Below, piece after piece: positions 6,797 through 38,631 of a stretch of DNA of 51,914 nt. How positions within the stretch are numbered: the stretch's first letter is position 1; each line of letters begins with the position of its first letter. This DNA comes from Octopus bimaculoides (Eukaryota), in contig NC_068997.1 of the NCBI RefSeq assembly GCF_001194135.2, positions 48,674,022-48,725,935 on the forward strand. Reading direction: 5' to 3'. A program made the translations under genes and the position numbers. The notes under the pieces are model-generated. The model searched no databases. It saw only the letters and a list, made by a program, of their open reading frames with translations, and was not told the DNA's origin.

Positions 6797-6874
6797 TTAG
6801 TTCATTTTATTTGGAACAAGAGGTATGTTGCTACACGTCTGCATCTGTGCTTTCCGGACCCGTACAGATTTTCT
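6797..6874 (-). CDS. Probable terminal coding exon ([25 protein letters not shown])
   Basis: Acceptor after ~30 nt of pyrimidines (ttttcttctttttctttag|AGA); phase 0 matches the preceding exon; TAA at 6797-6799. Confidence 0.58.
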   Translation of the reverse strand, partial: RKSVRVRKAQMQTCSNIPLVPNKMN

Positions 6875-10498: not shown

Positions 10499-10532
<34 letters not shown>

Positions 10533-11246: not shown

Positions 11247-11283
<37 letters not shown>

Positions 11284-13290: not shown

Positions 13291-13331
<41 letters not shown>

Positions 13332-14503: not shown

Positions 14504-14538
<35 letters not shown>

Positions 14539-17500: not shown

Positions 17501-19749
17501 GTGGGGAGAGTCATTCTCTTTTGGTGCCTTATAATTTAACACACTCACCGTTAAAATTTCCATGTGTTTCTTTTTTTATTTTTCTAAAATTTTCGTTGCG
17601 TCTTGCAACCTTTTCAATAGTTTTGAAACTCAAAACTATTGAAAAGGTTGCAAGACGCAACGAAACTTTAAAAAAAAATTAAAAAAAGAAGCAAGTGGAA
17701 ATTTTTCCGATGAGTGTGTTAAATTACAAGGCACCAAAAGAGAATGACTCTCCCCAGACACAATAGAATATACATACATATAGATATATAACTACGAGGG
17801 GATACCCAAAAGTAACCGGAAATGTTCACTGTGGGACAAGCCCATTATTGTTTAGGCTTTTGCCGCGAGAAGCCAGTTGATGAGACCCTCAAGCATCAGT
17901 CTGCCGACTTGCGTCATTGTTTGGGGTTGTACTACAAAGTGGAGCGCCTTTATTTTACAGTTCTTCTCCCCTGTTCGTCGAATTTTGCGATGACTGAAAC
18001 GAAGGAACAGCGTGCTTCCATGGAACTCTGACCATAACCCTGACCCTAAGTTGGTCTCTTGCCTTTTAAAACCCTCTTTCTTCTTCTCTTTCTAATCTAC
18101 AGTCTATTCTGAAGAAGGACTCTCCCCGAAGCAACAAAACAATTAACTGCTCCCGTAAACTTACTCTGTCTATTTTACCTCCTATTTTATCTTTTTATTC
18201 TACGGTATATACATAATGAGTAGGCGTATTTACAGGTAATTAGTGATCAGGTTAGAGGGGGATATCTAGAAATCCAACGTCAAACAAAGGTGGAAGAAAT
18301 TCAAACAAACACGAGTTGGCTATAAGCAATGTACCGGTCGACTAATAGAAGTACGTTAAATAATGGATGAACAGGCGGTTGTTAAAGGCATCAAATCATT
18401 TATGAAATAGTTATGCAGAATAAAGAAGTGAGTATAAATAATATTAAGGAGGAAACAGGAACATCAGGAGAGCGAAAGTTCACTGTAGACTTCATGTGTA
18501 TGATGATATTCTGAAAGTCAATACTTTAATATTACGGATAAAAATATGAAAGAATCCGTAAAGTTCTAGGTACTTGTTGTTCATAGACAGGAAGATACAA
18601 GGCGCACTTCTAAAGGTTTGAAACATTTTTGAGAGAGGCATTTATTGATTTCAAAGAAGTACAAAACTCTAATCTCCTTCGAAGTAGGATTCTCTGACTT
18701 CAATGCACTTTTTGTAGGGATTCAGCCATGATGTAAAATGGTGCTAGGTATTATATATGAAAGTCCGCCATATTATTGCTATAGTCAGCGTTTCAACATT
18801 AAGAACATCGTACACGGAGGCTTACAGTGAATATGCCTTGCATAGTCTAATTGCGAACAGCAGGTTAATTAGGGATACTATAGGGATGAACTTAAATACT
18901 TTATTACAGCTTAGCGCTTTACTGTGGCTATTGTCACACTAGAAGTATCGTATACTCCTACTACAACCTTTCGAAAATATTGAAAATAATACTCACATTT
19001 TCGGTTCCGTCATCTCCGCTCGGTAGAGCTGAAAAAAAAAGAAGAAATACATAAATATATCAAATACACACTATAACACATTCAGTTCTATGGATAAATA
19101 TATTTCGTGTGACAGGCTAAGTCATGAACTTTACAACCTTTATGGTTTCTACGGCTGGATTCCTTTCCCACGCCAATCATTTTACAGAATGTGTTATGTG
19201 CTTTTATCTGGTACCACACGAGCGTTTTTATGTGGCACCGGCACGAATGCTTTTTACGTGGTACTGACAGAAGACTCTTACAGGCCAATCACCTTCACCT
19301 GGGAGAGTGGGCTTAGCACTTCTGCCGTGTGGTACGGGTCTTCTTGGGAAGACCAGGTGGTGCAGCAAAGCGATAGTAATTAGTTCTTAATATATGCAGT
19401 AATTGTATCATTTTTGAGATAGATTGCCATGGCCTTTATGGTGTATGTCTTTGACATCTCTGTTCGTAGAGTGAGCGCTTAGCTGGCGCGAAGTATCTAG
19501 GACGCTTGTGGACGACACTCGTGTGCAAAAGATTTGATGGTGTTAACTATATAGAAATGGGTTTCAATAGAGGTAGATGTTCTTAGCTCGAGGTCTGCTT
19601 TAAAGAATCATCGAACCTCTATTGAAACCCATTTCTATATAGTTAACACCATCATATCTTTTGCACACGAGTGCAATTGAGTACTGGGGTCGATGTGATC
19701 GATTATCCCCTCTCCACAGATTCTAGCCATTGTGCTTATAGTAGAAAAG

Positions 19750-19785
<36 letters not shown>

Positions 19786-22530
19786 GAAGTTGCAGCCAGA
19801 AGAACATAGTTATTGAAATTGAAATAATATTTTTGTCAGATACACGAGGACAAGTTGAGTGTCTCATACTAGGACCATGCTTACAGGGAATAAAATAAAT
19901 AGTACGCAAGATATGCATTTTTCTTTACAAAAACAGAAACGAAGGGCTGAAAAAGAAAAACAGTAGGAAATTTTGGACGCTTACACTGCCATTTCTTCTC
20001 CCTGGCATAAACTATTCTTCTACTTTCAAGTGTAGGGGCAGATTTTCTATCGACTGGAAAAGAAATAGTAAGGAATTTTTAAAAAAAATCTGTTATATGC
20101 AACAGAAGCAGTATTAGATTCAAATAGATATTTGTGTATCATACTTAATGTAAATACATCGCGAAAAATCAAATTTACAATCTTGTAGTATATAGCTTGC
20201 ATTACAGACATGAATTCTCTGAATTTCATGTCGGTATTAGGTGTAGAGAGACATTGGGGCCAATTTGTTTGATGATCTTTTTCGCAATTGATTTCCAGTT
20301 TGCTTTATAGAAGTCCAGATTGGTTAGATTTTAAATGCTTTACGTAGGCTGCATGTCTGCGGGTTTCTTTAGTCTATAAATGCTCAGCTCTATTATATTG
20401 TAATCCGAGACTAGCGTCGGTGTCTTTCATTTTCTTCGCCAACGAAATGCAGAAAAGGTATGATATACGGCTAATTACTTCTAAAGTGTATATGAGAAAA
20501 AAATGAACTAACGTGAAGCGTTAATTTGCTCAATGGTTAATATATTATAATTTAGAATGTTTACTTACATATACCGGGACCCTAGAAACGAAAAAAATAT
20601 ATAACAAAGAATATATTAATTTGCAGCGAGGTCAGCGAAAAATAACCGAAAAAAAAAAAAGAAAGCAAAACAGAAAACAAAATAGAAACCGAAACTATTG
20701 ACACAATTTAAATTAATTCTTTCGTTTTTAAAAATTTGATGTATTATGGGATGCGCAAAATATATTTCCCTTGTATCCATGTATTATAATTAATACACAT
20801 TCCCATTTAATTTTGACCTCAGGAGTAGCTAAAAGCAGAGCTTTATATAACTTTCAACGAAACAAGGTACATGCGACGATCACGTGCTACACACCTGCAT
20901 TCCAGGCACAGCTGTAAATAGCAGAAGTGAGCTAGAACATTAAACCTTAGTACACATGCACTGTAGAGATCAAGGTCAATTTTTGCCCACGATGGGCTTC
21001 ACTGCACGTGTTTTAGTTTCGTTACTATGGCAACAGCGAGGATAGTTATTGAACAGTCCTCGTATATATATATTTATACGGTGAAACTTAATTTAATTAT
21101 AAATTTTGCTGAATTGAATTTAATTGAGTTTTTACCTGTAAATTTGGATTTTTATCCTTAATATTATATATATATATGTAATGGATAATAAAACAAATGG
21201 TTTACACCTGGTAGCTTACAGGTAAAGCACGGTCACTTTCAGAGTGATCGTTAGGTAAATAACAAATGAAAGAAAGACAGAAGAGAAGTCGATGCTAGAT
21301 GTGTCGAAACGATTGTTGTTATTAATAATATATTCTCGTATATACTCCATCTTCTGCCTTTCATTCGTNNNNNNNNNNNNNNNNNNNNNNNNNNNNNNNN
21401 NNNNNNNNNNNNNNNNNNNNNNNNNNNNNNNNNNNNNNNNNNNNNNNNNNNNNNNNNNNNNNNNNNNNNNNNNNNNNNNNNNNNNNNNNNNNNNNNNNNN
21501 NNNNNNNNNNNNNNNNNNNNNNNNNNNNNNNNNNNNNNNNNNNNNNNNNNNNNNNNNNNNNNNNNNNNNNNNNNNNNNNNNNNNNNNNNNNNNNNNNNNN
21601 NNNNNNNNNNNNNNNNNNNNNNNNNNNNNNNNNNNNNNNNNNNNNNNNNNNNNNNNNNNNNNNNNNNNNNNNNNNNNNNNNNNNNNNNNNNNNNNNNNNN
21701 NNNNNNNNNNNNNNNNNNNNNNNNNNNNNNNNNNNNNNNNNNNNNNNNNNNNNNNNNNNNNNNNNNNNNNNNNNNNNNNNNNNNNNNNNNNNNNNNNNNN
21801 NNNNNNNNNNNNNNNNNNNNNNNNNNNNNNNNNNNNNNNNNNNNNNNNNNNNNNNNNNNNNNNNNNNNNNNNNNNNNNNNNNNNNNNNNNNNNNNNNNNN
21901 NNNNNNNNNNNNNNNNNNNNNNNNNNNNNNNNNNNNNNNNNNNNNNNNNNNNNNNNNNNNNNNNNNNNNNNNNNNNNNNNNNNNNNNNNNNNNNNNNNNN
22001 NNNNNNNNNNNNNNNNNNNNNNNNNNNNNNNNNNNNNNNNNNNNNNNNNNNNNNNNNNNNNNNNNNNNNNNNNNNNNNNNNNNNNNNNNNNNNNNNNNNN
22101 NNNNNNNNNNNNNNNNNNNNNNNNNNNNNNNNNNNNNNNNNNNNNNNNNNNNNNNNNNNNNNNNNNNNNNNNTGATCTCATATCAAGATAAACAACTCAT
22201 GACCTTGCAGGTGGGGCCCAGTTAGAATTTTCTTCAGGTCGAGTAACCCGTCCCGCTCAAAAGGTTCCTGAATAAGATTTGTTTAAGGATGTTGAGCAAA
22301 ACACCCATGTTTCCAAAGGTGAATTATTCAAACCCCAAAGAATTCCTCTCAACACATGGCTATGATGCTCCCCCACTACTTCTGCTCATGATCAGAGATG
22401 CACATATCATCAGCCACCAAGGGACATGCTCAACTGGTTAAGGCCAAACAAGTGACAAGCAAATCTGTGGTATTGAGCAGAATATTTATTATTATTATTA
22501 TTTAGCCCTTGTGGCCAATAAAACGAATTA

Positions 22531-22587: not shown

Positions 22588-24609
22588 TCTCCCGTCGCTA
22601 CGTTCTAAGTTCAAATTTCACCGAGGTCGACATTCGGGATCGATTAACTAAGTACCAGTTACGCACTGGGGTCAGTGTAATCGACTTACTACCTCCCCGC
22701 AAATTTCAAGCCGTGTCCCTATTGTTATTATTATTATTAGTATTATTATTATTAGTAGTAGTATTATTATTATTAAATCTGCATACTTGTTACAATCCCT
22801 TGTCGAGAAACACCCAGTGCAAGTGAAGGATAAGTGATGTTACAGTATGACTGAAAGTTTAGGAAAGGAAAATGGCAGGACCAGTAGCGAAATATCTTCA
22901 TGTAATATAGCACAGACATTTAAATTGATAAGGTTTTTCTAAGGATGTGGGCGCTACTTGTTAACACAAACTTTTGGACTTCTCTAAGACATGGTTCTCC
23001 TGGGATATTATCTATATATTTCGGGCGTCCCTTTCTTATCATACCTAGGGTACCCACAATAACAAGAACAGTTCTCTACATGTTTTGTATTTCAATTTCC
23101 AGGTCCTTATATTTACTTAATTTGTTACATTCATTTACAGATACACTTGTTATCAGTGGGAACACTTGCTTCTATTAGCATACAAGTATTTTCTTCCCTG
23201 TCTTTAATGACTATGTCTGGTCGATTAGTCTAAATCGTTCTGTCGGTGTTGACTGGAAAATTCCAGAGGATAGTGACATTTTTACCTTCAACGACTGGCT
23301 CAGGATAATGTATGCTAGTAAGCAGGAGTGTTGATTTTGTAGTGTCTACATATTTTCCGATGTCCTACTGTCCTACCCCATCGCGGCTATTTTTCTATTC
23401 GTTTGGTGTAAGTAAAGGCATCTTGAAACGGGATGGTCTATTATTTCGTCAAATGTATCGCAGAATCTGCATTTACAGTCAGAACCGTTTGGAAAAACGT
23501 TAGCCTGCTGGTTTTTGGTAAGCAAGCTTTGATATTTTGCTGTCAATTGCTTTCAGTCCTGAGCTTCTCAGCTACTGATGGATTGTTGCTTGGTCTACAT
23601 TTTGCAAAGATTCAGCGCTGAGCTACTGAAATAAATACCTCGTTGTGTCGTATGTTCCGCTCAGTAACACAAATTTGCTTGCCAGTTGCTTGACCTTAAC
23701 CACTTGAACATGTCCGTTAGTGGCAGACAATATGTGCATCTCTGATCCTGAGCAGGCGTAGTGGGGGAGCATCATAGGCATGTGTTGAGAGGGTTTCTTT
23801 GAGATTTGAACAAATGTAATAAAAGCAAAGTTTGAAGGAAATATTAGCCATTTTTCATCCTTTCTAGGGGAAAGCAAATAGGAAATAACAGTTGCAACCA
23901 AAGAACAAAAATCGTGTTCCACAGTATTATCAGTTACTTATTTCGTTCTTGTAATTGATCTGCACGATTCTTAATGTGAACACGTGTGTTGAAATATATT
24001 TGGGTGTATCTGAGGAGGGTCATTATGCAAATAATAAACACACATCTCAGGTTCTATTCGCGCTTCTATGTACTTTTTAATCTGTCAATTGGTTAAATAT
24101 CAAACCAATTGTTTGTTTAATCGTTCGGTTGCTTAATCAATCAGCTAAATTTGTTAAAGCCATCGTCATTACTGACCTCGCCAATGTCATGCCCACTTAA
24201 ATCCACATCTGTCTCAAATCCGAGCGCGCGCGCGTATGCGTTTATTTGCATAATGACCTCCCAAGATACAACAAAATTAGTTACTTAAGCTAGCAGGAAA
24301 ATTATTTCTGTCAACTTACTGTTGAGGATGTTGTCTTTTGCGACAGAATTTGTGATTTCTTTGGGAGAGTTTTTCTCTGAATAGAGATACAAATTTTCCA
24401 AGAAGTTGTCCATCATTACATCTGGGGTTACCATTGTCAACATTGATGTGAATATTGCTTCGGGACTGCCTTCACGATGAATGCAGAATGTCTTCCGTCC
24501 ACTGAGACCTTCTAAATAACAAAAAAAAAATCACTCAGTATGAAAAGATGGTATACATCGAACACAATTAAATTTGTAGGAAAATAGAGCACAAAAACAT
24601 AATATTAAC

Positions 24610-24640
<31 letters not shown>

Positions 24641-26279
24641 GTAGTAGTAGTAGTAGTAGTAGTAGTAATAATAATCCTTTTTTATTAAAGGCACAAGGCC
24701 TGAAATCCGGGGATGGAGAGAGGACTAGTCAATTACATCGGCACCGGCGGTGTTTCACTCGACTCGAAAGGATAAAAAGTAAAGTCGACCTCGCTGAAGG
24801 TTGAACTCAGAATGCAAGAATGGACGACGTGCTGCTAAGTACTTTGTCCGGCAAGCTAACGATTGTGCCAGATCGTCGCCTTTAACAACAACAACAACAA
24901 CAGCGATAATAATAATAATCCTTTCTATTGTAGGCACGAGGCCTGAAATTTGTGGGGACGGGGATAGTTGAAGGTATCGACTACGGTACTCAACTGGAAC
25001 TTAATTTATCGACCCAGAAAGGATAAAAGGTAAAGTCGATCTCGGTGGAATTCGAACTCAGAAAGTACAGACAGACGAAATACCGCTAAGATTTATGCTC
25101 GGCGGGCTAACGATTCTACCAGATCACCACCTCAATAATAATTTCTACTTGAGGCACAAAGCCATGAAAATTTGGGGGGAAGGGGGCTAATCGATTACAT
25201 CAACTCCAATGCATAACTGGTACTTATTTCATTGACCCCGAAAGGATGAAAAGCAAAATCGACTTCGGTGGAATTTGAACTCAGAACGTAGCGACAGACG
25301 AAATATCGCTAAGCATTTCACCCGGCGTGCTAACGTTTCTGTCAGATCGCTGCCTTAATAATGATAAGTAAAATGGCAATTTTGCAAAAAGAGAGACCGA
25401 TAGAATAAGTACCAGATGTGGAAAAAAAAAAAGCATTGAGGTCAATACGTTTCGACCAAACTCATTCAAGGTGGTGCACCATTATGACCGCCGTCAAATG
25501 ACTCTAACAAGTAAAAGATAGCAGATTAATGGTAGAAATGAAGATTCGGATGTACAGATGAGTAAAATCGAAGAGACTAACTCTGACTTGTTATCATAGA
25601 GGTTTTCACCTGGACACATAAACGCGGAGTGATTGAAGATATAGATGAGATAATGGAAGCCGTATTACGTACTATAATTTACTTACCCGGCATTTCAGCA
25701 GAGAAAATACTGGAGGTCACCTTTTGGGCTGGTATAGCTTCTTCAATTTCGTTTACTTTAACATGAATCTTCTCATCGACATCTATGTTAAATATGATAA
25801 AAATCGTCGACTGGCCCTTTGAAGAAAAAAAGTCGTACGTGTATATGCAGGAGTATATATGCAGATGTAGGCGTGACTATGGGGTAAGAAGCTTGCTTCC
25901 CAACCACATGTTTCAGGGTTTAGTCTCACGGCGTGATACCCTGGGCAAGTGTCTTCTGCTAGGAGCCTCGAACTGACCAAAGCTTTGTGAGTGGATTTGG
26001 CAGACGGAAACTGAAAGAAGCCCGTCGTATATGTGTATATGTATATATGTATATACCTATGTGTGTGCGTCTTTGTCTGTATTTGACCCCAACACAACTT
26101 GACAACCGGTGTTGGTATGTTTACATCCCCGTAACTTAGCGGTTCGGCAAAAGTGAGCTGTAGGATAAGTACCAGGCTTAAAAAAAGAATAAGTGTTGGG
26201 GGTCAATACATTCAACTAAAAATTTCTTCAAGGCGGTGCCCCAGCATGACCGCAGTCAAATGACTGAAACAAGTAATAT

Positions 26280-26321
<42 letters not shown>

Positions 26322-29300
26322 NNNNNNNNNNNNNNNNNNNNNNNNNNNNNNNNNNNNNNNNNNNNNNNNNNNNNNNNNNNNNNNNNNNNNNNNNNNNNNN
26401 NNNNNNNNTATTATATATATATATATATACACATATATAATTTAATTCATAACCATTTTTATTTACTTATTTTTATGTTTCCGCAACCCTAACTGGCACT
26501 TCGTCGGTTACGACGACAAGGGTTCCAGTTAATCTGATCAACGGAACAGCCTGCCCTTGAAGTTAACCCACAAGTGGCTAAGCACTCCACAGACATTCGC
26601 ACCCTTAACGTAGTTCTCGGGGAGATTCAGTGTGACACGGAATATAAAAATGCTGGCCCCTTTAAATTACAGGTACAACTCATTTTTGCTTTCTGAGTGG
26701 ACTGGAGCAACGTGAAAACATGTGACTTGTTCAAGAACACAGTGCACCGCCGGGAATCGAACCACTAAGTCACTCTGCAACCCTAGGATTCTTAAGGCCC
26801 GTTACGTAGTTTCCGTATTTTCTAAGTGACTGCAATTTCAGCAAAGCCCATGAACGGAACACCGATTCCTTGCCGGGTTCAAGGCTAACAATTTTTTCGG
26901 TCGAGTCAAATCGATTACATCGACGCCTAAAACTGACTGGTACTTAATTTTCTCGACTCCGATGAGTTGAAAGGCAAATTTGATCTCAGAATATAAAGCA
27001 CCAGAAGAAATTCCGCAAAGCATTTTGTCCGACGTGCAAACGATCCGGCCAATTCAAGGGATTATGTGAGATGCACTATTTTGTGTTCTCTTATAGTTTA
27101 TTGTGATTTAATGGAAACAGATTAACGTCCGCGCAGTATTTACAATCTTTTTTGATGGACCTAACATGCTTTCAAATTTTGGTAAAAGGTCATCGGTTTT
27201 AAGGGCGTGATAAGGCGATTACATGGAACCCAGTATTTAACAAGTACATATTGTGTCGATTCTGAAAGGATGATAGGTAAAGTCGACCTCGGCAGGATTT
27301 GAACTTAGAATGTAAAAGAGTCGGAAGAAATACCGCTAACCGTATCGTCCAACACGTTAACGATTCTGCCACGTTGCCGTCTTTATCCTGGAAATAATAT
27401 AGTTTGTATACTCAGCGGGGAGCTGGCAGAATCCTCAGCACGTCGGACAAATGCTTAGCGGCATTTCGTCCGTCCTTGCGTTCTGATTTCAAATTTCGCC
27501 GAGGTCAACTTTGCCTTTTATCTTTTCGTTTCGGAGTCGATAGAATAAGTACCAGGTACGCACTGGGAACGATGAAATCGACTAACCCCCTTCCCACAAA
27601 TTTCAGGCCTTGTGTCTTTAATAGAAAAGATTATTAAGGCGGCAATCTGGCTGACTCGTTAGCGCGCTGGAGAAAATGCTTAGCGACATTTCGTCCATCT
27701 TTATGTTTTAAATTCAAGTTCCGCCGAGATCGACTTTACCTTTCGTCCTTTCGGGATTGGCTCGATGTAATCAGCTACCCACTCATCAGAGGTTTCTGGC
27801 CTTCTGCCAAAATTTGAAACCAATATATTGCTTGTATATTAGTGTAGCCAATTTTGTTTTTTAGTCAGGAAGACAACTATTTACAACTTCTCAGCAACTG
27901 GTGAGAAGAATGTATCGTCCAACCAAGAAATAGTCCACATTCTTACCACAGATTAGACTCCGATAAAGGTCCACCCTTCGGGTGCCAAGCAGTGATGTTA
28001 AAATGAGCGACCGATCAAGTCAACCAAATACGACATGGTGGAATTTGAACTCAGAATGCAGAGATGAAACGCAACAAATATTGCAACATATTCTGCTCAA
28101 ACATTGTTATATTTCTGCCGATTCACGTAAAAGTGAAAAGCAAGTCGACCATGGCGGGATTTCGACTCAGATCATTGAGTGCCTGATTAAATCTTCTGTT
28201 TTAACGACTCCACTGATTTGTCGTCTAAATCTTTCTGTGGTACATGTGACTACACTCAGAACATTTGTAATCGTTTTACTACGCTTGCCATCTCTGCTTG
28301 TAGATGCGCTCTGATTAATTCTTGTATATTTGACTTCTGTTCGTGCATGTCTTTTTTGTCACTGGTTATTAGATTTGATATCTGTTCATGTTTCTCATAA
28401 GAATTTTGGTGATGCATTTTTCCCGTGTTACTTTCTAGGTGGAGGGCCTAAATTTGAAAACAGAATGGTCTAAGAACACTAAGATAAATAGTTAAACAGT
28501 AAAACAACGGTGAATAATATCAGCAAAATTACAACTTACAATAATGAACAGGCGACACCAATGTCATCTCAATGATTAGCCAGAGATGACTTTTAAAATG
28601 AGAACATCTGAAATAAATTCGACAGCTCTCACAAACGAGAATACTAAAATGAACCCGATCGCTCTTAAAAATTAAGTATTAAAAAAACGGTAGAATGATA
28701 CAAAATCCTTGTCCGGTTTTGGATCGATTCCAAAATTGAATCAGTTCGTGCCAGTCACAAGGCCAAACATCCCTGAAAGTTTCATCCGAATACGTTCAGT
28801 GATTCTTGAGATAACTTGTCCACGGACAAACAAACAAACAAAGACGTCCGCAAACAATACCTCCGCCTTAGCGAAGCCGGATGTAAGCAAAAAAGAAATA
28901 GAACGAAGACAAAAAGCAGAAAAAAAAACACTAGAAAATAAAAGGTTTTTATGTTTATTTCTTTCTATTCAAACTGTCTACTTACCGGGTATAATATCTC
29001 TGGTACAACATCAATGCATATCAATCGGCCATCCATGTGCAAGTACTCCTCTTCCTCCTCAACAAATTGATCGCTTGCAAAATATTCGTAATCTTCAATG
29101 ATGCAGAGCAGTAGTTCACGAACGTTTTCTGGCGTTGACTTTAATTCTACTACATTTGAAATGTTGAACAGAAACTGCTGAAGACAAGACTTAATTTTGA
29201 CATTCGAATAAAATATGTTGAAAAATCCGAAATTGGATTCATTTGCTATCAAAATTGGTTGAAGATTATACTCCATGCCCGGCGATAATATAATGACCTT

Positions 29301-32300
29301 CACTAAATACTCTGCCAGCATACATTCTGTCAGGTTTGAAGAGAGCACCATAGTTGTATTCACATCGTAGTGCTTATCAAACATATTCTTTAAATAATCT
29401 GACCAGCTCTGCCCATCGTTGTCGTAAATGAATAAGATTTTTACTGAAATAGAAATAATATTTTACTCGTTATATTTAATATAGAAATAAACGTTTACAT
29501 ATTTATACTGGAATGAAACATACCGATGGATTTGTATGAAATTCCTGCTCAACATTTGCTGAAATTTGTGTCGTATGAATTAATCTGGGTTCATGACGTA
29601 ACAACGTAACGTGTTTTATTTAATTTATATTTAACAAATATGTTTAGAAAGATATAAAACTCCTAATTTATTGTGGAGACAATAGAGTATTAGTGTTGGG
29701 ATAATGATTGTTTCTGATTTAGATACAAGATCAGGAAATCAAAGAAGAGGTGGTACTCGTCATCATCGTCGCCACCACTTGACTGGAACTTTTTTTAAAG
29801 ACCCCGAATGGATGGAATTCAAAGTTGATCTCAGTGAGATTTGAACTCAGAACGTCAACAACACTATACAGCATTTTCCGGCGATCCATTGATTTTTGAA
29901 TGATCGCTTCGTAAGTGTGACATAATAATGACTTGTAATTTTTGGCCACAAACGCCAACAACTTTGAGAGGAATGATTAGTTGATACAATGAGATAAAAC
30001 TGATTCAGATCATAAGAGTCAGAAGACATTTTGCAACGATCAAACGCTTTTCTCATCAGTCTGTCATATGTTTGGGATAATAAATCTTGCTGATTGTCAA
30101 CACGAGATGAGCCATTTTGAGTGGAGATGGCAAGTCGATTGTATTGACAGGCACTTTATTTTATCGACCGCGAAAGGATGTAAGGCGATCTCGGTGGATT
30201 TTGAACTTAGAACGCAAAGAGCCGGAAGAAATATTGCCAAGCATTTTGTCCAATGTACTAATGATTCTATGTGGGGGCACATGGCCTGATGGTTAGAGCA
30301 GCAGACATGCAGTCGAGGGATCGCAGGTTAGAATCTCAGACCGGGCGTGTACATGTACGTGTTTATGAGCGAAACCCCTAAGCTCCACTCGGCTCCGGCA
30401 GAAGGTAATGCCGAACTTCTTCTGACTTTTTCGTCACATCCTTCTCACTTTTTCCTCCTGCATCTAGCAGTTCACCTGAGACGGGCCGACGTCTCGTCCA
30501 GGTGGAGAATCTATACGTCAATGAAGCTGGGAAACTGGCCCCTATGATCCAGGCATGGCTCGAGAATATNNNNNNNNNNNNNNNNNNNNNNNNNNNNNNN
30601 NNNNNNNNNNNNNNNNNNNNNNNNNNNNNNNNNNNNNNNNNNNNNNNNNNNNNNNNNNNNNNNNNNNNNNNNNNNNNNNNNNNNNNNNNNNNNNNNNNNN
30701 NNNNNNNNNNNNNNNNNNNNNNNNNNNNNNNNNNNNNNNNNNNNNNNNNNNNNNNNNNNNNNNNNNNNNNNNNNNNNNNNNNNNNNNNNNNNNNNNNNNN
30801 NNNNNNNNNNNNNNNNNNNNNNNNNNNNNNNNNNNNNNNNNNNNNNNNNNNNNNNNNNNNNNNNNNNNNNNNNNNNNNNNNNNNNNNNNNNNNNNNNNNN
30901 NNNNNNNNNNNNNNNNNNNNNNNNNNNNNNNNNNNNNNNNNNNNNNNNNNNNNNNNNNNNNNNNNNNNNNNNNNNNNNNNNNNNNNNNNNNNNNNNNNNN
31001 NNNNNNNNNNNNNNNNNNNNNNNNNNNNNNNNNNNNNNNNNNNNNNNNNNNNNNNNNNNNNNNNNNNNNNNNNNNNNNNNNNNNNNNNNNNNNNNNNNNN
31101 NNNNNNNNNNNNNNNNNNNNNNNNNNNNNNNNNNNNNNNNNNNNNNNNNNNNNNNNNNNNNNNNNNNNNNNNNNNNNNNNNNNNNNNNNNNNNNNNNNNN
31201 NNNNNNNNNNNNNNNNNNNNNNNNNNNNNNNNNNNNNNNNNNNNNNNNNNNNNNNNNNNNNNNNNATGTGTGTGTGTGTGTGTGTGTGTGTGTGTCTTCG
31301 TATCTATGTTTGTCTCCCACCAACACTTGACGACCTGTGTCGGTTTGTTTACGTTCCCGTAACTAGTGGTTTGGCATTAGCCCAACAAAATAAGTATGAG
31401 GCTTTAAAAATAAAGTTCTGCGCTCGATTCATACGTCTGAAAATTCTTCCAGCCGGTGCCCCAGTATGGCCATAGTCTAATGACTGAAACAGGTAAAAAA
31501 AAAGTTTCTAAAGGGGAGAAAAATATAATTGAGTTTTATCTTAACGAGAAAGCGATCAAACAGCCGGGTGGCTATGTCAGGAATGAATTTAATAGCATGA
31601 AGCAGGTCCAGTTAAAAACATTCACAGATAGAAAGAAAGTTCAAGATGAGAGATGACACGGACTCCGAATTAATATTACAAGAATGCGAGAAGTGCAATA
31701 TTTAGGAAGAATTGCCAAGGGAGCTTCTATGCGAATAATCGATGTATAGAACCTAAAATACAAACAAGAAAAAATGCAACAAGAAAAGACAACAACGTGA
31801 GAACGTAGTACATGCAAAATGTTAATGAGACGTTCAGAGAAGAAAAGAAATATATACGTGGTTTGATCAATAAGTATCCGGGCTCTTGCCATAGCAATGA
31901 AGCTAAAGCCGGCAGAGTGAATCCGCTTGGCGGATATTGACCTTAAACACGGCTGTGCTTGTGCGCTAAGTTTTAACCTTCTAGCTCACTTCCGCTCTTT
32001 CTTGGAAGGAATGTGTGTAGAGTGTGATCGTCGCATTGAACATGACAGAGAATGTTGAGCAGAGAATCTGCATCAAATTTTGCCAAAAGCTTGGTGACCC
32101 CTGCTCAGAGGCCTACGCAAAGTTTTCAAAAGTTTTCATCGTTCTTGACACAATCAAAGAGATCTTGCGCAACTGAAACCCGGGTGTCTTTTTGGTCAAC
32201 TGAAAGCAGTTTTGGCACAAACTTGGCAGACACGTGTTTGATACCCAAATCTTCAGTGATAATAGACTGAACTGAACAGTAACTAATCTGCATATCCTCT

Positions 32301-35300
32301 GATAACTCACGGATGGTGATTCGACGATTTCCCCTAAAAAAAACTGCACACACATCTGTGATGTTTTTCTCAGTTCTGCTGTTTGTGGGTCTCCCAGAAC
32401 AATCGTCAATATCGCCATCTTTTCGGCCATCTTCGAAACGTCTGAACCAGTCGTACCCTTGTGTACGGCTCATACACTCCTCTCTATACACTTTCTGCAA
32501 ATTTGCGTAGGTGTCATGGCAGGTGTCACCACGAAAACTTTCTCTGTTGTAGTCAGTGCGACAATCACATGCTGGACAGATTCCTTTCAAACACTGTAAA
32601 CAGCGGAAGTGAGCTAGAACGTTAAAACTTCGTGCGCATGCACAACAGTGTTCAAGGTCAAAATCTTGGTTGTATACAATATATCCTCTTTTTTGCATAT
32701 TTATCGCATGATAGCAACTCCAACAGTTGAATTTGGTAAAATCCAAGCCCAGTCGGTCATAAGTTTCCTCTTTTTGCAAGGCGTCGGAAATCTATGGCAA
32801 GATGAAGGAAGTTTTAAAGGATGGCTGTCCATCTTGTTCCACAGTGAAATTCTGGGTGTCAAAGTTTCGAACTAGTCATTTCGACGTCACAAATGAACCC
32901 CGGTCCGGACGTTCAACTTCTGCGACCTCAGAGTGCAAAACCGACGCTGTGCGCATTATGATTCTGGAGGACCGTTGAATTTCAGTTAACGTCATAGCAG
33001 AGACTCCGGGGATTTTCCGCGAAAGAGTTGGCTGTTTCATGCACAACATTCTGGACATGAGATAGCTTTCTGCAAAATGGATGCCGAAATGCCTGAACGC
33101 AGATCAGAAGCGCATCAGAGGCGGTTTTGGACCGGTTTGCAGGATGAGAAGCTGATTTTATGGCTCGTTTAGTCACCAAGAATGAAACATGGTTACAACA
33201 TTATGATCCCCAGACCAAGCAGCTATCAAATGAGTGGCCCTTCTCCCAGCAGTTCACCACGTCCCAAAAAGTTTTGAATCCAGAAGTCAGCTGGAAAGAT
33301 CTGGGACAAAGACGGAGTACTCATCATAAAATACCTGCAAGAAGGTCGCACCATCAACACAAAATACTACATATCTAAGTTGGACGAACTACATTAAGCT
33401 TTGAGGCAGAAACGCCGCGGAAAGCTGAGCCGTGGTGTTTTGTTTTCGCAGGACAATGTTATCAGCACACACAGCACATGAAATTCTACGGAAAATACGC
33501 AACTTTGGCTTTGAATTTGCAGACGACCCACTTTACTCTCCTGACTTGGCCCCCTCTGAATATCACCACTTTCCAGAACTATAGAAACATCTCAAGGGAA
33601 TGAAATTTCACTCCGATTCGGAAGTGATTGCTGCTACAGAGGCCTGGTTGGGGGCGCAACCTTCCGAGTTCTTTTTTACAGGGCTTAGAAAAGCTGAAGA
33701 AACCAATGCAATAAGTGTGTGAATCTGAGGGAGGAACATGTTGAATAAAATCATAATTAACTGATCTTTCGGTATTTTCTTTTATCCAAAGCCAGGACGT
33801 TTATACATACATACATACATTATATATANNNNNNNNNNNNNNNNNNNNNNNNNNNNNNNNNNNATATATATAAATTATACATTGCAGAAAATTACGTTAC
33901 CGGCCAGCTATCTCATGGCTGGCCGGTAACGTATGTTTCTGCAATATATGGATAATTTATCCTCATCACGCTATTTATTAGCATTATCACGCGTTTGAGA
34001 ATGAAAAAAAATTTTTTTTCTCTATCTTTCAATACATCTCAACGCTTCTAAAGCAAACTTTGTTTGTTTACTTTCATCGTAAGTTATGTATATATATATA
34101 CATCGACTACTAAGCAGTGCATAGTATGTGGTTACGTATTTTATTTGCTTTTTCTGCAGTCAGTATATTCATTGTAAAAACTAGGTTGCTATATACTTTG
34201 ACACACGCCTTACACACACATAAACAAACACACACATATGTCTCTTTATACACATACCTAGTTAACACCAAAACAGGTATATAATGTTAATGCACATGTT
34301 TTGTTGCTTGTATTAATAATAGACAAGGTTATTTTTCTGTTGCTGTTTTACTAAAAGTCGGTTTAGATCGAAGTAGTTTTCTTTCTTTTTCTTTTTTCTT
34401 TTCTGTCTTTTTACTGGGCTACGTTGTCGATTGTAGTATTTCTACTTCTTTCAAGGCGGTGAGCTAGCTGATTGGTTATCTCGCCGGGCAAAATTTCTTA
34501 GCAACGTTTCTTCCTGTTTTAGATTCTGAGTTCAAATTCCGCCGTGGTCGACTTTGCATTTCATTCTCTCGGGGTCGATAAAGTAAGTACCAGTTGTGCG
34601 CCGGGGTCGATGTAATCGACTTACATACATACTCGAAATTGTTGGCCTTGTGCTAGAATTTGAAATCATTATTTCATGTAGCTTTGAGTCAGCTAGATGG
34701 CAGAATCGTTAGCATTCCCGACAAAATGCTTAGCGGTATTCCGTCTGCCTTTAACGTTCTGAGTTCAAATTCTGCCGCGGTTTACTTTGCCTTTCGCGAT
34801 AAATAAAATAAGTTCCAGATTAGTAATGAGATCGATGTTATCGTTGACTAACCCTCTTTTTACTGAATTTCAGATTTTATACCTAAGATAGAATTATTTC
34901 TTCTTGCTTAATATTTTTGCTGTTTTCTTTCTTTTGTTTTTTCTTTCTTCACTTTTTTTTTTTTTGAGAAAGTGAATGCGTTTGAGAGTGATTTTGCTGG
35001 TATTTCTAGCAGACAGGTCCAGAGTCTGCACAGTCAGAGAGTGGTGGTGGATATTACACACAAAATTGCTATTAGTCTGAATAATCTTGAGGCATATTTG
35101 AACCTGCAAGAAAGCCTTTCACCGTGTTTATCATGGAGAAAATTTCTCGATGTTGATAAAAGAGGTGTAAATCGATTGAATCATGTCACAGTGTCACCTA
35201 ACCAAACTGTCTGATGCATAGCAATGCACTGGATTTCGGAGTAATTATTTCTTCTCCAGTGACAGAAACCAGACAAGTCAGCTCAGTGAGCTAACACCAG

Positions 35301-35849
35301 GGATTATATTTACGGATTATATTTGCAGTGAGCCGCCGATTAACACTACCTGTCATTGAATGAAAACAGGAATATAAAAAGAGAGATATGGTCTCTCATG
35401 TCATTTCGTAGCACCGCCCTCTCTGGTTTCTAAATATATAAATATAATCAATTATATCGAAGGGTTATAGAAATATTAGAAATTTCTACCACCAGTGGCC
35501 TAGCGTGTAAAAATTTAGTCCATAGATTATATATTTTTCTTCATGTAAATACAGTGTACATTTAAACACATAACAGGTATCCGTNNNNNNNNNNNNNNNN
35601 NNNNNNNNNNNNNNNNNNNNNNNNNNNNNNNNNNNNNNNNNNNNNNNNNNNNNNNNNNNNNNNNNNNNNNNNNNNNNNNNNNNNNNNNNNNNNNNNNNNN
35701 NNNNNNNNNNNNNNNNNNNNNNNNNNNNNNNNNNNNNNNNNNNNNNNNNNNNNNNNNNNNNNNNNNNNNNNNNNNNNNNNNNNNNNNNNNNNNNNNNNNN
35801 NNNNNNNNNNNNNNNNNNNNNNNNNNNNNNNNNNNNNNNNNNNNNNNNN

Positions 35850-35905
<56 letters not shown>

Positions 35906-36486
35906 AACTCTGAACCTTTCTCTTCCACCGAAACGTGACTCGTTTTCAGGTTATTACGACAGAATAGTTTTGTATATGGTCATAATGTACCTAACAAGAA
36001 CAGCAAATATAAAAATATAAAGCTTAATATTATCTTATATAATATATCGCATATATTGTTGTTTAGAGCACAATTTATATTTATTTATGTCTTTTTCAGA
36101 TATCGCGTAATCCCAACTATACTACACAAAGTGGCCTTCCTGAATCGGTAATGTGTAATTTTAAGAAAATTTAGCTATTTCAAGCAGGAAAAGTCAGTAC
36201 ATCAAGCCTCCCTCAATGTGATGGACCTCTGTCGTCCTATGATGAGGATTCAGTTGGTCGATCACCTGATTTACCTGCTCTTGTTTTAACACCCAAATAG
36301 TCAAATATTCTAAAGACACGAATAAGTTTAACATGATTCTCAGACCGAATCAGCGGGACGCAGTATGTGTGACAATGCTCTGCCGTTCGAGTTAAGAATT
36401 CAATGCGTCCGACAGGCTTCAGTACATTTTCCGTCAAACTAGACGATCATGATGCTGACACCCTAACCACTAAGCCACGCGCCTCC

Positions 36487-36531
<45 letters not shown>

Positions 36532-37253
36532 TATATATGCCGACCAAAAATCTTGTGAATGGATTTGGTAGACGGAAACTGAAAGAAGCCCGTCGTATAT
36601 NNNNNNNNNNNNNNNNNNNNNNNNNNNNNNNNNNNNNNNNNNNNNNNNNNNNNNNNNNNNNNNNNNNNNNNNNNNNNNNNNNNNNNNNNNNNNNNNNNNN
36701 NNNNNNNNNNNNNNNNNNNNNNNNNNNNNNNNNNNNNNNNNNNNNNNNNNNNNNNNNNNNNNNNNNNNNNNNNNNNNNNNNNNNNNNNNNNNNNNNNNNN
36801 NNNNNNNNNNNNNNNNNNNNNNNNNNNNNNNNNNNNNNNNNNNNNNNNNNNNNNNNNNNNNNNNNNNNNNNNNNNNNNNNNNNNNNNNNNNNNNNNNNNN
36901 NNNNNNNNNNNNNNNNNNNNNNNNNNNNNNNNNNNNNNNNNNNNNNNNNNNNNNNNNNNNNNNNNNNNNNNNNNNNNNNNNNNNNNNNNNNNNNNNNNNN
37001 NNNNNNNNNNNNNNNNNNNNNNNNNNNNNNNNNNNNNNNNNNNNNNNNNNNNNNNNNNNNNNNNNNNNNNNNNNNNNNNNNNNNNNNNNNNNNNNNNNNN
37101 NNNNNNNNNNNNNNNNNNNNNNNNNNNNNNNNNNNNNNNNNNNNNNNNNNNNNNNNNNNNNNNNNNNNNNNNNNNNNNNNNNNNNNNNNNNNNNNNNNNN
37201 NNNNNNNNNNNNNNNNNNNNNNNNNNNNNNNNNNNNNNNNNNNNNNNNNNNNN

Positions 37254-37292
<39 letters not shown>

Positions 37293-38192
37293 CAGTTTGC
37301 AATGTTTAAACCGAAAAGATAATTGTCACTAAATGTAGCTAGGAAGTTAGAAAACACGTACATTGCTAGAAATAAGAGCTAAACCACTCTAATGTTATAG
37401 TTAAGGCACATGAATGAAACGATATGCACTAACAGGGATCATAATCGTCCGAAAAGGGCCGATCGAGTATTAATCTTAATCGACACTTTTCGCAGGTTTA
37501 CCGTCCTTGTTAGTGCATATTTTTGCATTTATGTACGTGAATTACAGGATTAGATCTGTTTAGCTCTTATTTCTAGCAATGTAGGTGTTTTGTATATGTA
37601 TATAGCGTTGCTACTTCTAACGGTCACTTGGCTATGTAACATCTTAGCTCGTAAGTTACCTCATCATTTCGCATTTGTCTTGCTTTTATATGTTAATTCC
37701 CTGAAGATAAATATATGTGGAATTCCAGCAGCTCTTACTTCTTTGGAGGAGAGCACACATATATTTTGAAACATGTGTAGGAATTAAAGGAACTTTTATT
37801 TATATGCATTTGGCTCCATTTATTGTTTTTATTCATANNNNNNNNNNNNNNNNNNNNNNNNNNNNNNNNNNNNNNNNNNNNNNNNNNNNNNNNNNNNNNN
37901 NNNNNNNNNNNNNNNNNNNNNNNNNNNNNNNNNNNNNNNNNNNNNNNNNNNNNNNNNNNNNNNNNNNNNNNNNNNNNNNNNNNNNNNNNNNNNNNNNNNN
38001 NNNNNNNNNNNNNNNNNNNNNNNNNNNNNNNNNNNNNNNNNNNNNNNNNNNNNNNNNNNNNNNNNNNNNNNNNNNNNNNNNNNNNNNNNNNNNNNNNNNN
38101 NNNNNNNNNNNNNNNNNNNNNNNNNNNNNNNNNNNNNNNNNNNNNNNNNNNNNNNNNNNNNNNNNATGATATATACATATATAGATATAAAT

Positions 38193-38223
<31 letters not shown>

Positions 38224-38278
38224 GTATACATGTATACATGTATAATATATATTATATATATATGTATATGTATATATG

Positions 38279-38342
<64 letters not shown>

Positions 38343-38631
38343 TTTGTATCTGTGTTTGTATCCCATCTCCGCTTGACAACCGGTGATGTGTTTACGTCCC
38401 CGTAAGTTAGCGATTCGGCCAGCCGATATATAGATAAAATATGTATCGGCCTTGTAATCTGCAATGAAATATAAGTAATGGGCGTGATTCGTTCGACTAA
38501 AACCCTGAAACCCTAAAATATCAATAAACAACATAGACCAAAACAAAACAAACTGACCGACTGACCACGAAAGAAACGATAATGAACAGGGTATTACACT
38601 TACCGTCTTTTCTATCGTTTGACATGGCCAT
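6797..38631 (-). CDS. PIK3AP1-like: Spliced gene model: TIR + DBB adaptor of the BCAP/BANK1/Dof family (span includes introns; exons listed separately)
   Basis: Four large exons with GT-AG sites join in frame (phases 1, 0, 1). The translation resembles, from memory of the family, the BCAP N-terminal TIR (DILIVYSPDAEEWCQYL ~ [17 protein letters not shown]; VVVLLS ~ VKVIILS) and the start of DBB (VVQPDRIRCGAETTVYVIV ~ [17 protein letters not shown]). Family-level call only, not an orthology assignment. Confidence 0.72.
7743..8221. mobile_element. Tc1/mariner-superfamily (Tc2/pogo-like) MITE
   Basis: TIRs CCGTAAATCATCGAGTATA / TATACTCGAGGGTTTACGG with TA on both sides; no ORF. Confidence 0.72.
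8260..8322 (-). CDS. 63-nt exon ([21 protein letters not shown], phase 0 to 0)
   Basis: tttctttctttccag|ACT...AGT|gtaagt; only phase 0 is open. Confidence 0.68.
8979..8992 (-). CDS. 14-nt micro-exon (ELEK, phase 1 to 0)
   Basis: tttttcttttctcttttttattcag|CTGAATTAGAAAAA|gtaagt; very long pyrimidine tract. Confidence 0.6.
9527..9718 (-). mobile_element. SINE family A, 5' half
   Basis: Reverse complement of the family A head. Confidence 0.85.
9730..9973 (-). mobile_element. tRNA-derived SINE, family D (V-SINE-like core and tail)
   Basis: A box TGGCTTAGTGG, B box GGTTTCGATTCC, core ttgagcaaaacactt...ctccagtccactcagctg, GATGGACTGG..CCCGTCCAG. Head fragment also at ~36440-36486. Confidence 0.8.
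10569..10797. repeat. Diverged foldback with ~70-bp inverted termini
   Basis: aaaagtaatgtt...atggaacgacgttac...ttaacc / ggttaa...gtaacgtcgttccat...aacattactttt. Confidence 0.75.
11770..12385 (+). mobile_element. RTE-clade LINE 3' fragment
   Basis: [11 protein letters not shown]...[13 protein letters not shown]...YGSE, then [11 protein letters not shown]. Confidence 0.85.
12434..12459 (-). CDS. 26-nt micro-exon (frame ambiguous: KCIATQII or SASRRRSS)
   Basis: ttctttatattcgttttag|CAAGTGCATCGCGACGCAGATCATCA|gtaagt. Confidence 0.52.
14055..14073 (-). CDS. Candidate 19-nt micro-exon (VRGFL if entered in phase 1)
   Basis: cttctaatttttccag|TAGTTCGTGGGTTTCTTAG|gtaatt; begins with TAG, so it is a stop if entered in phase 0. 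Confidence 0.35.
14295..14700 (-). mobile_element. SINE family C, full length
   Basis: Reverse complement of the same two modules around a microsatellite. Confidence 0.85.
15470..15733 (+). mobile_element. SINE family A, 3' part (5' part in the gap)
   Basis: Near-identical to 45925-46195. Confidence 0.85.
15907..15926 (-). CDS. 20-nt micro-exon (GRANTL if entered in phase 1)
   Basis: atctgtttcag|GTGGCCGGGCTAACACTCTA|gtaagt. Confidence 0.52.
16362..16798 (-). mobile_element. Tandem pair of SINE family B (Deu/Nin-like central domain)
   Basis: Two copies of ttctgagttcaaattccgccgaggttgactttg...catcctttcggggtcgat...agtaccag. Confidence 0.85.
16805..16993. repeat. Long imperfect hairpin, 4-nt loop
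   Basis: About 77-bp arms with 14 mismatches, counted by hand. Confidence 0.85.
17153..17180 (-). CDS. 28-nt micro-exon (DYMNCQSRI, phase 0 to 1)
   Basis: tctgtttctcttttaaag|GAT TAT ATG AAC...A|gtaagt. Confidence 0.58.
17489..17771. repeat. Palindrome with a perfect 36-bp core and 3-nt loop
   Basis: 17591-17626 is the exact reverse complement of 17630-17665; outer arms diverged. Confidence 0.9.
17795..18031 (+). mobile_element. Mariner 5' fragment (TIR + MTETKEQRA)
   Basis: TA|CGAGGGGATACCCAAAAGTAACCGGA followed by a typical mariner N-terminus. Confidence 0.65.
18997..19028 (-). CDS. 32-nt micro-exon ([10 protein letters not shown], phase 1 to 0)
   Basis: tttcttctttttttttcag|...AAT|gtgagt; fits the preceding exon. 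Confidence 0.65.
19516..19673. repeat. 59-bp inverted repeat (1 mismatch), 40-nt spacer
   Basis: 19516-19574 versus 19615-19673. Confidence 0.9.
19985..20053 (-). CDS. 69-nt exon ([22 protein letters not shown], phase 1 to 1)
   Basis: ctatttcttttccag|...CAGT|gtaagc; only the phase-1 frame is open, which is the phase required. Confidence 0.65.
20190..20450 (-). mobile_element. Possible LINE remnant (endonuclease-RT linker)
   Basis: [11 protein letters not shown] and NWPQCLS...KFREFMSVM in broken frames. Confidence 0.35.
20569..20581 (-). CDS. Candidate 13-nt micro-exon (GPGI, phase 0 to 1)
   Basis: tttttttcgtttctag|GGTCCCGGTATAT|gtaagt. Needs an unseen phase 1 to 0 exon upstream to be in frame. 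Confidence 0.5.
20845..21062 (-). mobile_element. Mariner 5' TIR and leader fragment (same family as 31857)
   Basis: Reverse complement starts TA|CGAGGACTGTTCAATAACTATCC and shares the ttgaccttga...ttctagctcacttc leader. Confidence 0.7.
22780..23620 (-). mobile_element. RLE-type LINE 3' half (zinc knuckle + endonuclease)
   Basis: Reverse strand, broken frames: [13 protein letters not shown]...[35 protein letters not shown]; (TAA)n runs at the 3' side. Confidence 0.8.
24320..24511 (-). CDS. PIK3AP1-like: Coding exon, 192 nt, end of DBB-like region ([41 protein letters not shown]...DNILN)
   Basis: ttttttttgttatttag|AA GGT...AAC A|gtaagt; phase 1 to 1; 63 open codons. Confidence 0.82.
24680..25362 (-). 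mobile_element. Three consecutive family B SINEs
   Basis: Repeated gaaaggat..aaag.aaagtcga.ctcg..gga.tt.gaactcagaa units. Confidence 0.8.
25687..25816 (-). CDS. PIK3AP1-like: Coding exon, 130 nt, DBB-like ([43 protein letters not shown])
   Basis: ttttttcttcaaag|GGC...CCG G|gtaagt; phase 0 to 1, matching both neighbours; open frame. Confidence 0.82.
25868..26277 (+). mobile_element. SINE family C (CORE-like) with an internal (TA)/(TG) microsatellite
   Basis: aagaagcttgcttcccaaccacatg...ctgggcaagtgtctt...gaaactgaaagaagcccgtcg-[microsatellite]-...ccagcatgaccgcagtcaaatgactgaaac. Confidence 0.85.
26490..26780 (-). mobile_element. Chimeric SINE: family D core + family A tail
   Basis: ctccagtccactcag core followed by the family A gagaactacgttaaggg...ccgttgatc...gtcgtcgtaaccgacg tail. 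Confidence 0.7.
26860..27815. mobile_element. Cluster of family B SINEs (two minus, ~26860-27385; two plus, ~27410-27815)
   Basis: Same core in both orientations. Confidence 0.75.
28545..28885 (+). mobile_element. Non-autonomous Helentron/HINE-like element
   Basis: aagtttcatccgaat...(CAAA)n...AACAATACCTCCGCC-TTAGCGAA-GCCGGATGTAA terminal stem-loop; no ORF. Confidence 0.45.
28986..29443 (-). CDS. PIK3AP1-like: Coding exon, 458 nt: TIR domain, acidic linker with YLHM, start of DBB
   Basis: tttctatttcag|TA AAA ATC...TAC CCG|gtaagt; 152 open codons; contains most of track ORF 28965..29384. Confidence 0.88.
30270..30475 (+). mobile_element. Diverged SINE family A head
   Basis: ggcacatggcctgatggttagagcagc...gctccggcagaagg. 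Confidence 0.6.
31857..32133 (+). mobile_element. Mariner 5' end (TIR + [18 protein letters not shown]), same family as the inverted copy next to it
   Basis: TA|CGTGGTTTGATCAATAAGTATCCGG TIR-like start; leader similar to the reverse complement of 32500-32660. Confidence 0.8.
32124..32665 (-). mobile_element. Mariner 5' half (HTH region through KFVPKLL), second family
   Basis: ORF 32126..32779 C-terminal part: WFRRFEDGR...SGRP...[10 protein letters not shown]...[15 protein letters not shown]. Confidence 0.88.
32690..33805 (+). mobile_element. Decayed mariner (DD34D-type) transposase copy
   Basis: Broken frames give SAKWMPKCL (WVPxxL motif), VTKNETW..HYDP, QDN and [10 protein letters not shown]; many stops and frameshifts. 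Confidence 0.9.
33870..33960. repeat. Short hairpin with a 28-bp stem
   Basis: attgcagaaa.. tacgttaccggccagc / gctggccggtaacgta.. tttctgcaat. Confidence 0.85.
34455..34865 (+). mobile_element. Tandem pair of family B SINEs
   Basis: ggcggtgagctagc... and gctagatggcagaatcgttagc... heads with the shared core. Further single copies near 7440, 22600, 28010, 29780 and 30130. Confidence 0.78.
37351..37591. repeat. Foldback/MITE-like element with 26-bp perfect terminal repeats
   Basis: TACATTGCTAGAAATAAGAGCTAAAC / GTTTAGCTCTTATTTCTAGCAATGTA, plus inner atatgcactaaca / tgttagtgcatat. Confidence 0.8.
38604..38631 (-). CDS. PIK3AP1-like: First coding exon (MAMSNDRKD + phase 1); whole exon 38604-38654
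   Basis: Minus strand: ttctacag|TGATTTAGGGATACAACGACGAAATGGCCATG...GACG|gtaagt. In-frame TAG upstream of the ATG; phase-1 end matches the next exon (G+TA = Val). Confidence 0.7.

Follow-up and report, generated by a model that had tools for sequence, protein, structure and literature searches.

BCAP (PIK3AP1) is counted among the mammalian Toll-like receptor (TLR) adaptors and has been described as regulating TLR signalling negatively (PMC6811498). Further DBB-containing adaptors are BANK1, which also has a TIR domain, and the invertebrate member Dof (stumps/heartbroken) of Drosophila (PMC5241739, PMC7128310). Dof couples FGF signalling through Grb2, and BCAP binds p85 via YxxM motifs (PMC6937578). 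The DBB domain of BCAP (PDB entry 6SWS) is made up of a TIG fold and C-terminal helices, with CAMTA1 and NF-kB p50 among its structural neighbours. The human TIR-DBB fragment (residues 1-311) suffices to repress MAL/MyD88-driven NF-kB, and this repression needs DBB-mediated dimerisation (PMC7128310). In our literature searches, neither cephalopods nor other molluscs were found to have a described BCAP-like adaptor. Here we report on the gene LOC106871447 of Octopus bimaculoides, which is encoded on the minus strand of a stretch of 51,914 nucleotides (nt) of contig NC_068997.1 (RefSeq assembly GCF_001194135.2, positions 48,674,022 to 48,725,935), in the following called the window. It is a real gene for a protein that combines a BCAP-type TIR with a DBB-like TIG domain, followed by a disordered tail; in our judgement this protein is likely a dimeric TIR adaptor or regulator.

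The window is 100% identical to chromosome CM046617.1 of GCA_001194135.2. Four exons proposed in a first-pass annotation of its letters could be confirmed. With AG acceptors (cag, aag, tag) and GTAAGT donors they join in frame to 808 nt, corresponding to 269 amino acids (aa) and one base, and an in-frame TAG is located six codons 5' of the ATG (38631). Over its entire length, the resulting peptide agrees with the NCBI protein P0001 (LOC106871447, 280 aa) at 100% identity. It also shares 74% identity with both the Octopus sinensis protein of LOC115221096 (P0002, 430 aa) and a hypothetical protein of O. vulgaris. A chance open reading frame (ORF) is ruled out by these matches. The locus had been described as a hidden gene; this does not hold, since NCBI already models it, as 'uncharacterized'. 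The database entries of this gene and of its relatives are labelled only 'uncharacterized' or 'hypothetical' and have no recorded domain. Missing from the databases so far are thus the functional assignment and the complete gene model.

The gene does not end after about 270 aa, as had been assumed, but runs on 3' of 24320 to position 6797. The full ortholog P0002 maps to 16 coding exons, those of the tail being mostly micro-exons of 13-34 nt. Thirteen of the 16 were located in the window with sizes, frames and splice sites conserved in comparison to O. sinensis. Exons 5, 11 and 13 gave no match there, and their collinear positions fall in or beside assembly gaps. The donor proposed at 24320 proved to be conserved and is used in O. 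sinensis, whereas the P0001 model passes through it into the intron after …NILN and thereby gains 11 aa. Intron read-through and the three exons in or next to gaps together account for the truncation of the O. bimaculoides model. Of the six runs of N within 24320-38631, all of them intronic, five lie in intron 1 and one (26322-26408) in intron 2. The O. sinensis locus (L001) is gap-free inside the gene and can be aligned collinearly to the window over every gap. In it the same exons are joined directly, and introns 1-3 hold no additional coding exon. The order of the exons and their frame are therefore secure, while the intron lengths in the window are estimates only, due to the gaps. For exons 1-4 the ratio of nonsynonymous to synonymous substitution rates (dN/dS) against O. 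sinensis is 0.50 at a dS of 0.26, with 0.62 in the second domain. The coding identity amounts to 86%, and many intron blocks reach equally high values. The gene is constrained yet fast-evolving. It is a real, intact protein-coding gene, and the four exons of the first-pass annotation form its 5' half.

The encoded protein consists of a TIR domain (about aa 10-135), a short acidic linker, a TIG domain with following helices (about aa 150-300) and a disordered tail encoded by micro-exons. In a scan against 24,736 Pfam models TIR_3 (PF18567) was the sole match (E 6.5e-5, 23.5 bits, aa 12-66, model positions 2-63 of 129), and it recurs in eight of ten family members. This is the family that Pfam assigns to the retrieved vertebrate BCAPs. 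The general TIR (PF01582) and TIR_2 (PF13676) models gave no match, TIR_3 being the only one at E<=10 (E<=1 in the family scan), and the Pfam scans showed neither death nor SAM nor ARM domains. Searching 177,635 PDB sequences with the family profile returned 5for_A, the BCAP TIR, as best match with E 0.0017, followed by a match with E 0.15; phmmer with the single peptide found no match among the PDB sequences. For direct comparison, vertebrate BCAPs carrying TIR_3 and DBB (P0024 and others) were retrieved with the N-terminal sequence of human BCAP. The latter served as bait only, and all comparisons used the retrieved database proteins. With hhalign, the family and the vertebrate BCAP alignment gave one collinear alignment of 205 columns that extends from the TIR into the start of the DBB (P 1.5e-4, probability 52%). 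The TIR part alone reached P 2.8e-5 over 47 columns, in comparison to P 0.4-0.6 for reversed-sequence controls. A hidden Markov model (HMM) of the BCAP TIR, run with filters off, gave nine of ten TIR-bearing members scores of 10.5-22.7 bits, whereas none of 2,200 shuffled decoys exceeded 8.9 bits. In the AlphaFold2 (AF2) model, residues 10-135 have a predicted local distance difference test (pLDDT) of 80-94 and form strands 12-16, 39-43, 57-62, 83-88 and 104-109 in alternation with helices. This predicted pattern agrees with the flavodoxin-like fold of a TIR. The assignment of the N-terminal domain as a BCAP-type TIR, proposed by eye before, is supported by convergent evidence from TIR_3, 5FOR as best PDB sequence match and the decoy-controlled HMM, short of Pfam's own threshold.

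For the second domain the evidence is structural. The AF2 model was built on an alignment of 14 sequences of the cephalopod family that contained no BCAP sequence; with the three octopus orthologs alone a pLDDT of 29 resulted, which was useless. Residues 150-245 are predicted as seven strands (152-232) with pLDDT 80-88, followed by helices 235-251, 262-274 and 286-309. A Foldseek search of 350,542 PDB chains returned the BCAP DBB at ranks 1-4 (6SWS chains A, B, C and E), with E-values from 3.2e-6 to 7.7e-5 and target-normalised TM-scores of 0.62-0.71. The TIG domains of RelB/p50, CAMTA1 and p65 came next. 6SWS was released in 2020, later than the structures used in AF2 training. As BCAP was also absent from the AF2 alignment, the match is not circular. 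According to the model, the second domain clearly has a DBB-like TIG fold. The earlier assignment as DBB is thereby upheld for the fold, as judged from the AF2 model and the four top ranks of 6SWS, and not for the sequence, as discussed below. Instead of a peptide with neither TIR nor DBB hit and with a non-flavodoxin-like fold, a TIR_3 match, an alternating alpha/beta fold and a 6SWS match were obtained. A likeness by eye between 'NPFSECFCQ' behind the TIG domain of the homolog P0004 and 'NPVEFMCQAF' of BCAP was rejected, because hhalign gave P 0.34 and aligned the segment elsewhere.

The family is small and fast-evolving, its named or traced members being from octopus and Sepia. When 1.84 billion representative proteins were searched exhaustively by HMMER with the octopus profile, only eight appeared at E<=0.001. 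These comprise the octopus orthologs, the octopus paralogs P0007, P0010 and P0011 (about 29% identity) and the proteins P0004, P0005, P0006 and P0009 from run or genome assemblies (170-460 aa, 28-33% identity). A word-index search with the family profile gave octopus proteins only. P0004 is found as an uninterrupted ORF on contigs of 1.6-1.9 kb in several public runs, among them the larval RNA-seq run SRR20545811 of Sepia esculenta. Further homolog transcripts stem from the runs SRR276660xx and SRR8281677. The Sepia ORF shows no break where octopus exons 2/3 and 3/4 meet (LYP/G and LP/E), which provides indirect transcript support for the octopus splice model. The family is transcribed and spans octopods and at least cuttlefish. 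P0005 and P0006 are 31% identical to each other and both stem from the run series SRR27666070-80 (L007-L011), which makes several paralogs probable in one or more non-octopus species.

The octopus gene itself has a neighbour of the same family. The last three exons of LOC106868210 (P0010) are located on the same strand, some 10 kb 5' of the start codon at 38631, and the two genes therefore form a head-to-tail tandem pair; the P0010 locus L006 matches the window with 100% identity. The NCBI model of this paralog (259 aa) appears to be without most of its TIR exon. A third, degenerate copy at window positions 746-967 was rejected as chance, as the tblastn matches had E 0.02-1, came from one query only and were accompanied by nearby stop codons.

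An octopus-specific insertion in the linker between TIR and TIG, present in all three orthologs, contains EEEEEYLHM (aa 138-146), a YxxM motif matching the p85 SH2 consensus. The Sepia-type homologs and the linker of the paralog do not have it. The tail has a conserved acidic Tyr motif, [DE]-N-x-Y-x-[NS], which reads NDENVYINS in O. sinensis and ENDYMN in the window, with NDENIYESI and SEDNYYEMI as the counterparts in the decapodiform-type homologs. Such short Tyr motifs can arise by chance. A YxxM array was not found, nor were proline-rich regions or a coiled coil detected, and no signal peptide or transmembrane segment was seen. An Ank-family Pfam match was obtained in no member, and with a length of 430 aa and residues 300-407 predicted to be disordered the protein has no room for ankyrin repeats. 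The C-terminal 60 residues include 16-17 Lys and Arg in most members, making this part strongly basic, and end in a conserved [IV]PxLP peptide. In P0002, residues 410-430 (window 6797-6874) return to an AF2 pLDDT above 80 after about 100 disordered residues. The basic stretch and the [IV]PxLP end may, judging from the model, form an intramolecular or partner-docking peptide.

Several results weigh against reading this protein as a relative of BCAP. With 23.5 bits, TIR_3 stays under its curated cut-off of 26.1 bits, and the match is limited to the first half of the model. All significant sequence signal is confined to the first beta-alpha-beta unit of about 47 residues, and the C-terminal half of the TIR alone has no significant profile match to BCAP. 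Among the Foldseek neighbours of the N-terminal domain, flavodoxins and response regulators are listed, and 5FOR is not among the best 50. The DBB model PF14545 gave no match at E<=10, either with whole proteins or with isolated domain-2 fragments, and domain 2 shows only weak Ig-type Pfam hints, e.g. TIG with E 0.097 in one homolog. Aligned alone by hhalign, it does reach the matching segment of BCAP (191-252), at a P of 0.22. An HMM of the BCAP DBB fails to separate the family from shuffled decoys. The post-TIG helices are predicted at low confidence (pLDDT 36-73). Furthermore, the exhaustive search contained no BCAP, BANK1 or Dof among its hits. The function of the octopus protein is entirely inferred, by analogy.

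Some of these results would also fit a flavodoxin-like and an Ig-like domain that are unrelated to BCAP, BANK1 and Dof. The TIR_3 likeness, confined to a single beta-alpha unit (I-L-x-I-Y-x-x-D-x-x-x-W-x-x-Y-L), would then be convergence or chance, and 6SWS would stand for a generic TIG. We regard this as quite improbable. Three independent searches (Pfam models, PDB sequences, decoys) single out the BCAP TIR, and among all PDB chains the best TIG match is BCAP, with an E-value about 65-fold better than that of the next non-BCAP TIG. Domain order and spacing are as in BCAP and collinear in hhalign. Two independent coincidences pointing towards one protein are unlikely. More remote still is the idea that the gene is a decaying duplicate, i.e. 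a pseudogene or a non-functional fast-evolving copy, and that NCBI has modelled a dead gene. The fairly high dN/dS, a coding identity not above that of many intron blocks and the truncated models of O. bimaculoides and O. vulgaris could be taken in this sense. Against it, all 13 visible exons are intact, including seven micro-exons of 13-32 nt that would quickly be lost without selection, and the ORF is intact in three octopus species at a dN/dS well below 1. The homologs are transcribed in cuttlefish, and assembly gaps and intron read-through account for the truncated models. Both explanations are less likely than a third one, which accepts the fold and differs in the function. There, the protein would be a positive, Dof-like adaptor below FGFR-type receptor tyrosine kinases or other tyrosine-kinase-coupled receptors, and its TIR only an interaction surface. 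The conserved tail Tyr, in octopus a Y-x-N that matches the Grb2 SH2 consensus, could recruit Grb2 once phosphorylated, and the YxxM of the linker could recruit PI3K. We consider this explanation unlikely as well: motifs of such length are expected by chance, the YxxM is not shared by Sepia-type homologs and the paralog, one conserved Tyr compares with four YxxM in BCAP, and neither a kinase-binding region nor ankyrin repeats are present.

As in BCAP, with unchanged order and spacing, a TIR_3-type TIR is followed by a linker and a TIG domain with C-terminal helices. By sequence the best PDB match is 5FOR, by structure it is 6SWS, and BCAP and the octopus protein are both cytosolic with Tyr motifs in disordered regions. 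On the other hand, BCAP has 805 aa and the octopus protein 430 aa. The latter lacks ankyrin repeats, proline-rich regions, the coiled coil and a conserved YxxM array, its DBB is not detectable by sequence, and it adds a polybasic tail that is encoded by micro-exons and ends in IPxLP. BANK1 and Dof, compared here by description only, are both long and have ankyrin repeats. As neither appeared in the exhaustive profile search, the octopus family is no close relative of either. The transcription factors EBF1, NF-kB/Rel, CAMTA1 and NFAT5 share the Ig-type TIG/IPT fold with the second domain. In contrast to these, the octopus protein has a TIR in front, and no DNA-binding domain (RHD, COE, CG-1) was matched by Pfam in the family, which points to the architecture of an adaptor and not of a transcription factor. 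The closest counterpart in domain content is the human TIR-DBB fragment, which has the same domains as the octopus protein in its folded part. It is a laboratory construct and not a natural gene, and functional equivalence of the two is suggested by analogy. The proposed membership in the BCAP/BANK1/Dof family is consequently retained for the TIR type and the DBB fold; without a DBB signature, ankyrin repeats and YxxM or proline-rich regions, the protein is not a canonical member. In effect it is the TIR-DBB core of such an adaptor alone, and most probably it descends from a core of this kind.

By analogy with BCAP, the protein is probably a dimeric TIR adaptor or regulator. The TIG/DBB-like domain would dimerise it, and the paired TIRs could engage TIR-containing receptors or adaptors (TLR, IL-1R-like, MyD88-type) and thus modulate the assembly of the TIR signalosome. 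This modulation would most likely be a restraint, because the human TIR-DBB fragment alone is repressive in the MAL/MyD88 system (PMC7128310). The tail might supply a phosphotyrosine docking site and possibly membrane affinity. A wider proposal, which we put forward only tentatively and hold to be rather doubtful as a whole, is that coleoids carry lineage-specific, tandemly duplicated minimal TIR-TIG adaptors. These would serve as dimeric cappers of TIR signalosomes, a natural equivalent of the inhibitory TIR-DBB module of BCAP that lacks the ankyrin and PI3K-docking parts. The TIR-DBB pair would then be an ancient signalling unit in its own right, older than vertebrate BCAP and BANK1, with the DBB diverged beyond sequence recognition.

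The features of the locus are collected in Table 1. Exon 5 of O. sinensis (L001 29220-29311) comes right after L001 28817, which is aligned to window 22173 and hence to the edge of a gap. Its exon 11 is bracketed by collinear blocks with ends at window 13928 and 13326. A stretch of 54 aa results when exons 6-10 are joined in frame, and exons 14-16 yield a C-terminal stretch of 50 aa.

Table 1. Coding exons of LOC106871447, assembly gaps at expected exon sites and exons of the tandem paralog, in window coordinates.
Feature	Position	Strand	Remarks
Coding exon 1	38604..38631	-	MAMSNDRKD + 1 nt; GTAAGT donor; same exon in O. sinensis
Coding exon 2	28986..29443	-	aa 10-162: whole TIR-like domain, acidic linker with YLHM, first TIG strand
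Coding exon 3	25687..25816	-	aa 163-205: TIG strands (AF2 strands E166-203)
Coding exon 4	24320..24511	-	aa 206-269: last TIG strands and first post-TIG helix
Assembly gap, expected site of exon 5	21369..22172	.	exon 5 = 31 aa, conserved G-x-x-F-N-P-F motif
Micro-exon 6, 13 nt	20569..20581	-	AG and GTAAGT sites; length as in O. sinensis
Coding exon 7, 69 nt	19985..20053	-	
Micro-exon 8, 32 nt	18997..19028	-	acidic run before conserved Tyr; GTGAGT donor
Micro-exon 9, 28 nt	17153..17180	-	bears conserved Tyr (E-N-D-Y-M-N)
Micro-exon 10, 20 nt	15907..15926	-	
Assembly gap, expected site of micro-exon 11	13409..13826	.	O. sinensis exon 11 at L001 44167
Micro-exon 12	12434..12459	-	SASRRRSS
Expected interval of exon 13	9524-10139		holds gap 10011-10085
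Micro-exon 14, 14 nt	8979..8992	-	one 3-nt size difference vs O. sinensis
Coding exon 15	8260..8322	-	polybasic 21-aa stretch
Last coding exon 16	6797..6874	-	25 aa and stop TAA 6799-6797
Tandem paralog LOC106868210 (P0010), last three exons	51581-51447, 49684-49637, 48793-48710	-	stop ~48709-48707; tblastn of P0010 and P0007

The disordered tail (window 6797-20581, minus strand) is derived nearly completely from micro-exons of 13-32 nt that are spread across about 14 kb, each with canonical splice sites. The introns contain further elements. In intron 1, an ORF of 217 aa (32126-32779, minus strand) matches Pfam HTH_48, the helix-turn-helix of Mos1/mariner transposases, with E 3.4e-6, a score above the cut-off, and represents the remnant of a mariner-type transposon. 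Dispersed intronic repeats of about 170-400 nt occur in many copies in the window and in the O. sinensis locus, including those at 16384-16801, 24913-25356, 25870-26284, 27211-27757 and 34453-34857; one copy stops only about 40 nt 5' of the acceptor of exon 3. Many (TACA)n and (ATGT)n microsatellites are found in the window as well, often adjoining assembly gaps. The Rfam scan of the window gave no match.

Nothing known is overturned by these results. They correct the truncated O. bimaculoides gene model, and the TIR and DBB-like assignment gives a function-level annotation to a family labelled 'uncharacterized' up to now. The short TIR-DBB version without ankyrin repeats is found here only in octopus and in cuttlefish- or squid-type sequences. 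As a natural minimal TIR-DBB protein it offers a means of testing the model of dimerisation-driven inhibition by BCAP. The DBB fold can evidently outlast its sequence signature, a point of relevance to the question where the BCAP/BANK1/Dof family comes from. For the cephalopods, a candidate regulator is added to the toolkit of TIR signalling.

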